Of a DNA stretch of 64,000 nt, positions 10,658 to 14,944 are shown one piece after another. The DNA is taken from NCBI GenBank assembly GCA_964188305.1, contig OZ076887.1, one strand, 5' to 3'. The stretch's first letter is position 1. Every line of letters starts with the position of its first letter. This DNA is from Podarcis bocagei (taxonomy: Eukaryota). A program made the position numbers and the translations under genes. Under the pieces are notes generated by a model. The model searched no databases. It was given only the letters and a program-made list of their open reading frames with translations, and was not told where the DNA came from.

Positions 10658-11395
10658 ACTTTTGTCCCTTTGTTTCTTTTTAGACTAGCGGAAAAATCAA
10701 CATTGAGCTATTTGTTAAGAAAATATGAAACTTTTTCTATGTGAAACCATGCAGAATATCATTTGTCAGACAAATATCCTCTCCAAATCCTGTTACAGAA
10801 ACACAATGTATAGTTTAACATCTGCCTTAAAATGCATTAAAAGCCAACAACTCAATGTCATTTTCAACTGACTTTATAGTATTGCCTGCTTGATTATAGC
10901 TCTCGCCGGGAGAGTAGAGCGTTTTGATATCATCCAACCCCCCAGAGACCCATTCAGACCAGCTGGTTTACTATATATTACATAATTACCCAGCACCTGG
11001 AGCAATTTTGAATTCTTAAGAGGCACTGGGGGCCCACTTCTCAAAATATTTACAGCCTTTTATTCTTTTCAAAACAATCATTTACATATTAAAACATGCT
11101 ATATGCAGATTTGCTTTATTTTTGTTTTCCTTTTAAAAAATTCCCAGATTGTTTTCAGTGGTTAACAGATTTTTTAAAAAAGGCAAAAGCAAAGAAATCT
11201 CTATATGCACCGAACAAAAAATTGTGTGCTTCAATAAAAAAGGAACTATTAGACTACTTTATGAAAATATACTGTATGTAGAATATTTCTACAGAGTCTG
11301 AAGCTACATCACAAGTCCTTCTTCCAATATCCAAAATATTTTCACATGAATTCAGATAGGGACCATATGCTGATGGAGTAAGGTCCTACAGCTGC

Positions 11396-11690
11396 GACTT
11401 CCGGGACAGCGCCATCGGCAATGGCGGAGTTCCTCTGACAGAGAGGAACCCGCTCCGTGAAAATCGGGTCTTGCCGCGGCGGCGAAGGCGGAGACCCTTT
11501 AAAAATCCCAGGCGGAGGAAGCCTGGGAACGTGGGATTCGGCTGACACCAGGAGCGCCTCCCCTACTCGCAGGGAAACCCTTTTTGGGGGGTCCGAAGCG
11601 ACGTGGGGTGAGTGGTGCGGTGTTTTGAATCAACCGCTACTTTTACGGAGAGAAGCCGCACAGCCGTTGCTGGAGAGCGCTGACTTTTTC
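11396..11690 (+). promoter_or_regulatory. CpG-island internal promoter of the L1-like element
   Basis: Dense undecayed CpGs in an otherwise CpG-poor window; starts with the ETS-type motif ACTTCCGG. Confidence 0.6.
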
Positions 11691-12312
11691 CTGTGGACAA
11701 TTGGACTCTCAATAAGTACCCGTGAGTAGAACGGAAAATTGGATTAAATATTAAGAAATATTTCAATTTGGCATTGAAACGGGAAGGTTCTGAACAGGAA
11801 GTCCGCCTCCCGTTTTTTGTAAATAGATGGAAGCAAAAACTTTGTAAGCTAAAGTCTGGAAAGTTGTATATAAAGTTCTAAATTTCCTTCATTCATCACC
11901 ACCAAAACCCCTCTTGGAAGCAGGAGAAAAGAGGGAGATTTTTGACTGTTTAAGCCTGCAGGAGAGAGAGTAAAGAAAGATAAATTTTCCACCGTCTCAA
12001 ACCTGGGAACAGGGTGTCAGAGACCGAAATTTATGGGGAAAGTTCATCGACTGTGAACGGAACGTCTTTTGACAGATAGTAAAAAAAGAGAGAAATATAT
12101 TGATTCCAATGTTGCTTCTTGCAATCAAAAGAAACAAAGTATTTGAAAAGTGAAAGTAATTTTTCTTTGTTGGCCTTGCTTTTAAAAGATGGATACAAAT
12201 AGAAATTGTCTCCTCTAGAGGGAGCTTGTTAATTTGTTGCCGGAGCTGATCTGGGGACCTCACAGCTGTATGATTAGGATCGTGAGACCAGACTCTAACC
12301 TTGGGGGAAAAA

Positions 12313-12915
12313 ATGTGTTTACAAGAAGTCTTGGTGCTTGCTTTTTGCAAGACAAGTGCCTTGCTGGAGCAGATGCATGAGAAGATGGATTTGATAACTG
12401 TTGCAGTTAAAAACTTTGGACAAACAGTGAATACCCATATAGAAACCATTCAGGAACCAGCTCAGGAATCTGCTTTGATAGGGCAAGCGCAAGGGCAGAA
12501 GAAAATGGAGGAGGTTGTTGTTGAACCTCAAATAACACAAATGGAGAGATCCGAGGCCTTGCAGGAGTATAAGCCGCTGTTCTTGAAGTTCAAATCTGGA
12601 GTGGACCAGGGGGGGTCTGGAGTTGTGAGGGCTCTTAATTTTGGAAAGACTTTGAAACATGCTCTTAAATATTTTTTGGATTACAGTGTTGACTGTGAGG
12701 AATGGGACTGTGGGAAATGGGCTGATCTGCTGAGGAGAGATGGAGATACTTTTGGATTGGAGTCCTCCCGAGACCTACCCCCCAATGAGAAAGGAAAGAA
12801 AACAAGAAAAAGATCAACAAAAGATGAAGTAAAGGGCAGGTATAAACAAGAAGAAGACCTGCGGAAGGGACATGGAAAAGATTTAAGAGCCTCGGACATA
12901 AGAGCACCAGGTTGA
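12313..12915 (+). CDS. Intact ~200-aa ORF of the HAL1-like element (possible ORF1p-like protein, putative N-terminal coiled coil, basic C-terminus)
   Basis: First ATG at 12313 has A at -3 (the track starts at an upstream TTG); longest ORF in the window outside the GC-rich 36.6-37.5 kb region; purine-rich sense strand as in L1; no recognisable EN/RT motifs. Confidence 0.55.
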   Translation: MCLQEVLVLAFCKTSALLEQMHEKMDLITVAVKNFGQTVNTHIETIQEPAQESALIGQAQGQKKMEEVVVEPQITQMERSEALQEYKPLFLKFKSGVDQGGSGVVRALNFGKTLKHALKYFLDYSVDCEEWDCGKWADLLRRDGDTFGLESSRDLPPNEKGKKTRKRSTKDEVKGRYKQEEDLRKGHGKDLRASDIRAPG

Positions 12916-13038
12916 TGGACTAGATAGACGAGAAAGGACTGACAAAACTCGAGACCAGGAAGAAGAGACGATGGATGAAGATTGGAAGAAAGTTTCAAAA
13001 TTTATTTAGAAAAGTATTGTAAAATTAATGAGTATTAG
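12912..13038 (+). pseudogene. Frameshifted remnant of the L1 ORF2 C-terminus
   Basis: LMD*...TRDQEEETMDEDWKK/F../YLEKYCKINEY* resembles the terminal residues of lizard L1 ORF2p. Confidence 0.6.
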
Positions 13039-14944
13039 AAAAATGTTTGAATGAAATTATTTGGCCTTAGCAGAAATGTCAAAAAGAATTATGAAAGAAT
13101 ATGTTATGGTTAAAAGAATTTGGTATATATAAGTTTTAAGTTTTAGAGTGTTTTTTAGGTAAGATAAGGTTAAAATAGATTAAGGTAATTTAAATGACAG
13201 AATATTGTGAAAGATGGAAAGGATTTGCTGAGATAATTAACAACTAGAATACAAAAAAGGGAGGTGTGAGAAGGTCGTTGAAATAAGTTAATGAAAGTTA
13301 AAGATTTGGGAATATTAGACTTGTCTTTTAATTGTTTGTTTATTTTTGTTTTTTGATTTAGATGTATTGTGTGTTTTGTTACTTTTTTTTACTTTGGTTT
13401 TTATTGATTTGTATTGTTTAATTGTTATGTTTATCTACTTCTTTATCTCTTCTTCTCCTTCTCTTGTCTTTTCTTTCTTCTTTCTTTGTAACTTTAAAAT
13501 TCTCAATAAACATCATTTTAAAAAAAAAAAGGTCCTACAGCTGCAACTGCGTTCCCTGATCCATGGGAGGATGAATTTTGAGCATAAACTAAAAACAAAA
13601 GCACAAGGAAGAAAGGAAGGAAGAAAATATTCTGGCAATCAGCTGTTCAGGAGTGGGGAGCAAAGGACTTGATTCCCCTTCCCACACTAGACAGCTGCTT
13701 AATGAGAATTCTACCTTTTTCTTTTTATTTTTAAAAGGTACTTCTCATGGAGCCTTGGATACTCCACCCACACTATGATAAGTCTCAGAGTCAATATATA
13801 TTTGTTTAAAACATGCTTAGGTGAAAAGCAAATGCAAATGTGAAATACTGGTCAGCAATCATTTTATTTTATTTCTCTTGGGGTGATAATTTTTGTTCTT
13901 AGACTGCAAATCTATCAAACGGGGATATGTCCTTAAAAGTGAAATTGTTGCCACTTGCCCTGAAGAACATCTACAAATATAGATCAATAATTGCACTCAA
14001 AATATATCCTTGTCAATGACTGACTAATCTGCCTGTCAGTTTACAATATGTGTGATACACATACACCCCTTCTCTAATATGTACCTTAGAGCATTGTATA
14101 CTGTTGGGCACTTAATAAATGTTAAATAATGGTCACAGCAGCAGTATTATTGTATACATTACTGTATTATGATATATTAGGTTCTTTCTAACTAATGACA
14201 AAAATATGCTACTTTTAAGTGCAGCACCTATTGACTTTCAGAAATTGGGTGGGGGAGTGAAGCAAGTGAAGTGATTATTCTTATAATAACTATACAGAGC
14301 CAGAAGGAAAGTAGTGAAAAGAGCATTAAAAAGCTAACGTGAAGATTTGTAGAGAGAAATGAACCCACTCCGTAAAATAGATAATTGACAGCTGAAGATG
14401 GAGGACACTATGATTTTCCAGCACTAAAAATATTTTTCTATACCTTTCTGAGGGAACAGCTATTACTCTAGATTCAGTCAAAGTATGCTGCCAGTGCAGA
14501 TATTCCACATGGTTTAGTCTCTTTCATCTTTCTTGGGGTATCACCTTAGATAAATGAATCATAATTGTTAATTTAAAAATATTAATTGCTCTTCATCTGA
14601 GTAACACTACAGTAGTTTGCAAAATACAATAAGGTAAATAAATATTAAAACTGCCATTTTGGTTGCCACCAACCTTCCTTTTAATTTTTTTTAAATTTTT
14701 GTCACAATTGGCCTACCTTATGGCAGCTCTTCCATGGTAATGTCTTTGCTCAGGCCTGATGATCTGATGAAGAAGACAAGGCATGAAATCTCTGAATATA
14801 GTTCTAGAGGTTTGCTTTAACAAACCCTAGAAGTCTTCTATTCTGGCATGTGGTTGAATGGAGGCAATAAGGGGGCAAGAAATATTTTCATTACATTTTG
14901 TTATTGTTACATCTGAACTGACCCAAAATGGCAAGTGAGCAGAT

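Follow-up and report, generated by a model that had tools for sequence, protein, structure and literature searches.

HAL1 (half-L1) is reportedly to be credited to Smit in 1999 and to Bao and Jurka in 2010. Mammalian HAL1 is described as a non-autonomous L1 derivative that encodes only the protein of the first open reading frame (ORF1p) and that arose several times (PMC5753468), and RNHAL1 likewise has ORF1 as its only coding region (PMC2241872). A complete ORF1p is composed of a coiled coil, an RRM and a carboxy-terminal domain (CTD) (Boissinot and Sookdeo, PMC5381506), and truncated human ORF1 proteins suppress L1 in trans (PMC5605252). Here we compare with these systems an element found in a 64,000-nucleotide stretch of DNA from the lizard Podarcis bocagei (contig OZ076887.1), the whole of which we call the window. 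Our analysis makes it quite likely that the 2.13-kb unit at positions 11396-13530 is one full-length member of a lineage of non-autonomous retroposons in lacertid-type lizards, which descend from L1, lack ORF2 and have had their ORF1 pared down as well.

The outer limits of the unit can be read directly in the sequence. A perfect 16-bp target-site duplication (TSD) brackets the 2.13 kb, the first bases of which are GACTTCCGG, starting at 11396. With a polyadenylation signal and a poly(A) tail also present, the unit carries the hallmarks of an L1-type insertion, which are placed as follows.

11380-11395, + strand: 5' copy of the TSD, 16 bp, identical to 13529-13544.
11396-11426, + strand: L1-type 5' terminus, GACTTCCGG, followed by ATGGCG at 11421.
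13505-13510, + strand: AATAAA polyadenylation signal, read in the sequence.
13520-13530, + strand: A-run of 11 A residues, a poly(A) tail remnant of 9-11 A, the last two of which may equally be counted as the first bases of the TSD.
13529-13544, + strand: 3' copy of the TSD, 16 bp, identical to 11380-11395.

The 5' extremity of Anolis clade-1 L1 elements is conserved as GACTTCCGGTG-N8-ATGGCG (Boissinot and Sookdeo 2016, PMC5381506). The first nine nucleotides of the unit are identical to this consensus, its ATGGCG sits 6 nt further downstream, and GACTTCCGG is found once in the window, where 0.04 occurrences would be expected. There is only a negligible probability that a 16-mer would match by chance exactly at the end of a poly(A) tract and at an L1-type 5' terminus. 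Furthermore, the TSD is perfect, the A-run is pure and CpG dinucleotides are retained, which indicates that the insertion is recent, or else unmethylated; the TSD by itself limits the age of the insertion only loosely. We read 11396-13530 as a complete and probably recent copy of a lizard L1-derived element that lacks a copying enzyme. The initial annotation of this DNA had reported a perfect 16-bp TSD, an AATAAA followed by 11 A residues, a 5' end with undecayed CpGs, a leader of about 900 bp, one ORF of 200 codons and a T-rich untranslated region (UTR), and all of these agree with the values that we give here and in the paragraphs below.

The second line of evidence comes from the ORF, which runs for 200 codons from its ATG. 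As references we used a set of lizard proteins of 305-376 amino acids (aa), most of them 339-376 aa (P0010-P0017), which were reached from another lizard protein, P0005, by way of P0007. We regard this set as L1 ORF1p because the name that UniRef gives to P0010 (an L1 RRM-domain protein), profile matches to human ORF1p and structural matches all agree. Specifically, the profile of the set matches the human ORF1p entries 2ldy, 2ykp and 2yko with E values of ~1e-3 over the RRM and CTD. The AlphaFold2 (AF2) model of P0010 consists of a long helix, then an alpha/beta region and then the CTD, and human and mouse L1 ORF1p account for the whole of the top 11 Foldseek matches of this model, with E values between 1.6e-6 and 2e-4 in ten cases.

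We compared with these references a profile of what we call the short family, composed of the window ORF and five other proteins (P0001-P0004 and P0006), two of the five being from Podarcis lilfordi. The match between the short family and lizard L1 ORF1p obtained with hhalign (probability 98.5%, E 1.6e-15) is colinear, aligning ORF residues 1-187 with ORF1p residues 50-318. Because coiled coils can inflate profile scores, the two halves of the ORF were also tested separately, and each finds its counterpart. When ORF residues 96-200 are used alone, the CTD is matched at ORF1p 256-323 with an E value of 5.4e-8, whereas ten column-shuffled control profiles all gave E values of at least 0.067. The CTD region of the ORF is also matched in a tblastn search with the Podarcis muralis protein P0008 (E 5e-4). 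The ORF and its recognizable parts are the following.

12313-12915, + strand: single intact ORF, a shrunken L1 ORF1 derivative of 200 codons plus stop, assigned from its homologues, hhalign and the indels of the family.
12313-12597, + strand: ORF residues 1-95, homologous to the coiled coil (hhalign with this part alone, E 8.8e-9 against ORF1p 56-128).
12661-12888, + strand: ORF residues 117-192, homologous to the CTD (hhalign with residues 117-200, E 4.5e-8 against ORF1p 260-323).
12691-12721, + strand: 15-nt tandem duplication inside the ORF, encoding DCEEW and DCGKW, a repeated DCxxW motif.

Relative to lizard ORF1p, the ORF has lost approximately 55 N-terminal and 35 C-terminal residues, such that 200 aa stand against about 360. 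The distal half of the coiled coil is degenerate, and the only part of the RRM seen in the window ORF is a remnant resembling strand 2 (VVRALNFG versus IVSAFRLG). At the level of sequence profiles, these comparisons identify the ORF as a reduced L1 ORF1 that has kept parts of the coiled coil and CTD and has lost nearly the entire RRM. The initial annotation had recognized neither this loss nor the ORF1 origin that the hhalign E value of 1.6e-15 demonstrates. Given that the 5' terminus matches the clade-1 consensus and that the ORF is homologous to ORF1p, we consider the unit as a whole to be derived from L1.

Searches outside the lizard proteins were less productive. When compared to Pfam, the ORF yields sub-threshold noise only and leaves the L1 ORF1 model unmatched; full-length lizard ORF1p also fails to match this model, and therefore the missing Pfam match is uninformative for lizards. 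A search of the ESM Atlas with the ORF gave no usable match, and the short-family profile matches nothing among the PDB sequences, mammalian ORF1p included. The relatives of the ORF that can be placed are lizard proteins.

The third line of evidence is the absence of a copying enzyme from the 3' part of the unit, which is composed of two segments.

12916-13295, + strand: A/T-rich stretch after the ORF, GC ~0.2-0.4, no Pfam match.
13296-13495, + strand: T-rich 3'UTR with pyrimidine repeats, T 60-63%, TTCTT-type repeats.

T-rich sequence and pyrimidine repeats are known from the 3'UTRs of lizard L1 elements (PMC5381506). An ORF2 of 3.7 kb cannot fit in a 2.1-kb unit, and among the remaining reading frames of at least 50 aa in the element, none matches any family. 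Frame pieces of the leader and of 12902-13353 match no Pfam family, including those for reverse transcriptase, endonuclease and the L1 ORF2 C-terminal region. Likewise, when the fetched proteins are compared to the window by tblastn, only ORF1 relatives match, and the ORF2-like part of P0005 matches nothing. As judged from its predicted coding content, the element is devoid of ORF2 and hence is not an autonomous L1. The A/T-rich stretch is where the initial annotation had placed a short degenerate ORF2 tail, a proposal that gained nothing from the Pfam search of 12902-13353, although this is a weak test in which the lizard ORF2 C-terminus was not compared. We also considered whether an out-of-frame ORF1 C-terminal tail follows the stop codon, and rejected this idea because no alignment beat shuffles (z < 3).

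A fourth line of evidence is that the short ORF has relatives of the same design. Two of them, identified by a word-based search, are intact Podarcis lilfordi entries labelled ‘hypothetical protein’; they measure 206 and 199 aa, are 65% and 54% identical to the window ORF, and begin and stop where it does. The other three (P0003, P0004 and P0006) are diverged, are 174-212 aa long and came to light when 1.8 billion representatives were searched with a profile. In a joint alignment, the start of each of the six short proteins falls on an internal methionine of ORF1p, near residue 56, and the complete ones end at DLRASD(I/L)R-x-P(G/D), approximately 35 residues before the end of ORF1p. When this alignment is compared to the P0010 model, a 40-residue block with strand 3, helix 2 and strand 4 of the RRM is absent from all six. 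The first half of the RRM is still kept, in diverged form, by P0004 and P0006, while its 34 residues (strand 1 and helix 1) are also lost from the window ORF and P0001-P0003. The five extra residues of the DCEEW/DCGKW duplication follow the same division, being present in P0001-P0003 and absent from the more basal P0004 and P0006 and from L1 ORF1p. Since derived indels are common to the short proteins, and since P0004 and P0006 keep the first half of the RRM, the alignment suggests that these proteins form one lineage that has shrunk stepwise, and not a private deletion in one copy. We further infer that the short protein has been kept by selection, because frame, start and stop persist down to 30-35% identity and the indels are all in-frame, with the caveat that protein databases list intact ORFs only. 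Existing deposits label such ORFs as ‘hypothetical proteins’, and correct annotation is needed.

Some other lizard proteins encountered in these searches have unusual architectures. P0005 is the Podarcis raffonei gene model LOC128406054, in which the N-terminal half of an L1 ORF1p is joined to an ORF2-like stretch; its N-terminal part matches ORF residues 1-79 with 39% identity (BLASTP E 1e-15), and the gene model is probably a mis-annotated, rearranged L1. P0008 and P0009 are TRIM39-like models from P. muralis that carry a RING, a B-box and a coiled coil followed by the RRM, CTD and tail of an L1 ORF1p, the ORF1p part residing where the TRIM C-terminal domain is expected. Such models may be artefacts of annotation; if instead they reflect a true TRIM-ORF1 fusion gene, it would be a candidate L1 restriction factor. 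In addition, repeated layers of the N-x-T type give the lizard L1 ORF1p coiled coil a match to the coil of a trimeric autotransporter adhesin (2wpq, E 8.5e-6). Doubt has been published on whether lizard ORF1p trimerises (PMC5381506), and this match bears on that doubt.

Whether DNA copies of the element exist elsewhere was assessed with 31-letter words. Between 25% and 41% of the element's 31-mers are held by 14 DNA-type runs that come from several studies and cover six organisms; by arithmetic on such words, this share corresponds to relatives that are about 97% identical. Given the perfect TSD, this pattern would be easier to explain by paralogous copies than by orthologues.

Several results nevertheless weigh against our conclusion that the unit is a full-length copy of a non-autonomous lineage. 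The element is present once within the window, and thus no second DNA copy is in view; no sequencing run holds more than 41% of its 31-mers; and a set of 5.8 billion proteins contains none that is more than 65% identical to the ORF. The AF2 model of the ORF is poor, with a pLDDT of 39, a low-confidence helix at residues 3-46 and values below 50 in the CTD, and so the domain assignments rest on sequence profiles. Finally, mobilization in trans by the L1 ORF2 protein (ORF2p) is deduced from the insertion hallmarks.

The first of these points leads to the best surviving alternative, in which the unit is a one-off, internally deleted autonomous L1 with a short ORF1, whose ORF2 was lost during or after this one insertion, by template switching, RNA splicing or a later deletion. 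This explanation gains from the fact that a single copy is open to inspection, and that the ORF1 remnant meets the 3' part at a junction that could be neither mapped nor compared. Moreover, P0003, P0004 and P0006 reside on contigs of only about 1 kb that end before whatever follows their ORFs. However, an autonomous L1 would probably not be served by an ORF1 that lacks the RRM. The perfect TSD also encloses the short form, and therefore the deletion predates the insertion. We judge a one-off deletion to be improbable.

A second alternative accepts the element as an L1-mobilized RNA and denies any role to its protein, the ORF being a neutral leftover. Consistent with this view, AF2 produces almost no confident fold for the ORF, and there is no sequence match to it in Pfam or the PDB. 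Against it, frame, start and stop are kept among relatives at 30-68% identity, indels are in-frame and the C-terminal motif is conserved. Such conservation is unexpected under neutral decay, even though databases list intact ORFs only, and this explanation seems to us very improbable, by a slight degree more so than a one-off deletion.

A third alternative is that a host gene domesticated from L1 ORF1, as are L1TD1 or Lyosin, gave rise to the unit as a processed retrocopy, in which case there would be no transposon family. Conservation of the ORF and its annotation as a protein in P. lilfordi fit this view, and reptilian domesticated ORF1 genes with domain losses do exist (PMC12129022; PMC4161310). 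What weighs against it is that the 5' end of the unit coincides exactly with the L1 terminal consensus and that its 3' end is a T-rich UTR of the L1 kind. The existence of at least six diverged paralogous lineages, two of them in one species on different contigs, weighs against it as well. We assign this explanation the lowest probability of the three, and a processed pseudogene of an ordinary gene is ruled out by the L1 terminus together with the ORF1 homology.

Returning to the non-autonomous L1 derivative, its leader has properties that suggest how such an element could be expressed. The leader is 917 nt long in total (11396-12312), contains six upstream ATGs and can be divided into two parts.

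11396-11695, + strand: first part of the leader, rich in CpG and with strong folding, a putative internal promoter and structured RNA, judged from GC, CpG and the RNA fold.
11696-12312, + strand: AT-rich rest of the leader with five further upstream ATGs, no Pfam match in its frame pieces.

Within the first 300 nt the GC content is 0.55-0.65 and there are 26 CpG dinucleotides; over the first 305 nt the GC content is 0.60 and the observed/expected CpG ratio is 0.96, compared to 0.16-0.20 in the flanks. The RNA corresponding to 11396-11695 is predicted to adopt a closed, multi-branched fold of -149.5 kcal/mol (z -6.48, 200 shuffles). Because these nucleotides fold far better than their shuffled counterparts, the leader may also act as an RNA. 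The leader length, the GC content of the whole leader (~45% by arithmetic from the measured segments) and the 3' GC content of 0.26 are within the ranges given for lizard clade-1 L1 elements, for which two CpG-rich blocks are described versus the one present here (PMC5381506). We also noted that GGAAGTC, the exact complement of the first seven bases of the element, occurs approximately 400 nt into the leader (11797-11803) and has no copy within the 3' part. Upstream of the element, on the - strand at 11117-11194, Rfam reports a match to plant MIR1514 with a score of 32 bits versus a gathering score of 90, which we take to be chance because it falls far below the threshold.

Based on these features, we propose that RNA polymerase II would transcribe the element from its own internal 5' promoter, starting at the first base, where an ETS-like motif (ACTTCCGG) and the YY1-like ATGGCG could serve as promoter motifs. 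A YY1 site is likewise found at the start of mammalian L1 elements (PMC5381506). The transcript would be polyadenylated at the AATAAA, and the resulting poly(A) RNA would be captured in trans by the ORF2p of an autonomous L1 and copied by target-primed reverse transcription. The initial annotation had proposed that the L1 3' end is kept for recognition; in mammalian L1, what ORF2p requires is the poly(A) tail and not the sequence of the 3'UTR. The bottom-strand nick would have been made at 5'-CCTT/AC-3', a site with the TT/A core that the L1 endonuclease prefers.

The part played by the encoded protein is more difficult to envision. With its RRM missing and its distal coil degenerate, the predicted short protein cannot be a classical ORF1p chaperone. 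It could instead help the element's own RNA to enter L1 particles, or to compete for them. A bolder form of this idea is that the RRM-less ORF1 remnant is not a relic but a selected adaptor, which joins or competes with L1 particles by way of its coiled-coil and CTD pieces. We consider this adaptor hypothesis to be speculative and on balance doubtful. A complex prediction with two L1 ORF1p coils and ORF residues 1-95 returned a score of 0.02, which speaks neither for nor against such a contact. If the hypothesis were true, then either the parasite RNA would gain access to ORF2p, or L1 would be damped as it is by truncated human ORF1p. The protein would then be a minimal ‘hijack module’ that defines the parts of ORF1p that matter for trans-mobilization.

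More generally, an independently arisen lizard lineage in which ORF1 has been pared to part of the coiled coil and a CTD remnant and yet conserved represents a natural deletion experiment, which indicates the parts of ORF1p that a non-autonomous RNA needs to exploit L1. Young copies of the element would also serve as insertion markers in lacertids.

How, then, does this element compare with described systems? With the autonomous lizard clade-1 L1 elements (PMC5381506) it has in common the 5' terminus GACTTCCGG...ATGGCG, a long leader of ~45% GC, a 5' CpG island, a T-rich 3'UTR, the AATAAA, a poly(A) tail and the coiled-coil and CTD homology of ORF1. In contrast, it is 2.1 kb long, has no ORF2 and carries an ORF1 of 603 nt, whereas lizard clade-1 L1 elements are ~6.4 kb long with an ORF1 of ~1,066 nt. 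The truncated human ORF1 proteins resemble the lizard ORF in that both are ORF1 fragments with coiled-coil sequence that come from defective L1-type loci. The human fragments are accidental, however, whereas the lizard protein is conserved, lineage-wide and carried by a mobile parasite.

L1TD1 (PMC4161310) and exon L of Lyosin (PMC12129022) are, like the lizard ORF, ORF1-derived coding sequences that were selected after domain loss. These are host genes or exons at fixed loci, whereas the lizard ORF resides in a TSD-flanked retroposon. Lyosin moreover keeps the RRM and is without the CTD, and the lizard protein exhibits the opposite pattern.

The literature that we searched, which did not extend to Repbase or Dfam, contains no description of HAL1-type elements in squamates. 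Like mammalian HAL1, the lizard element is derived from L1, is without ORF2, keeps an ORF1-derived gene and L1 ends, and is presumed to be mobilized in trans by L1. To this extent the initial annotation, which called the element HAL1-like, was accurate, L1 descent, the absence of ORF2 and the L1-type hallmarks all being borne out. The element is not, however, a plain ORF1-keeping derivative of that kind. HAL1 encodes ORF1p, whereas the lizard element, with its RRM almost wholly deleted, no longer encodes the coiled coil, RRM and CTD that make up the complete protein. Furthermore, it arose from a lizard L1, outside the mammalian HAL1 lineage. Our verdict is that squamates have, in this element, their own independent counterpart of mammalian HAL1, with an ORF1 that has lost its RRM.

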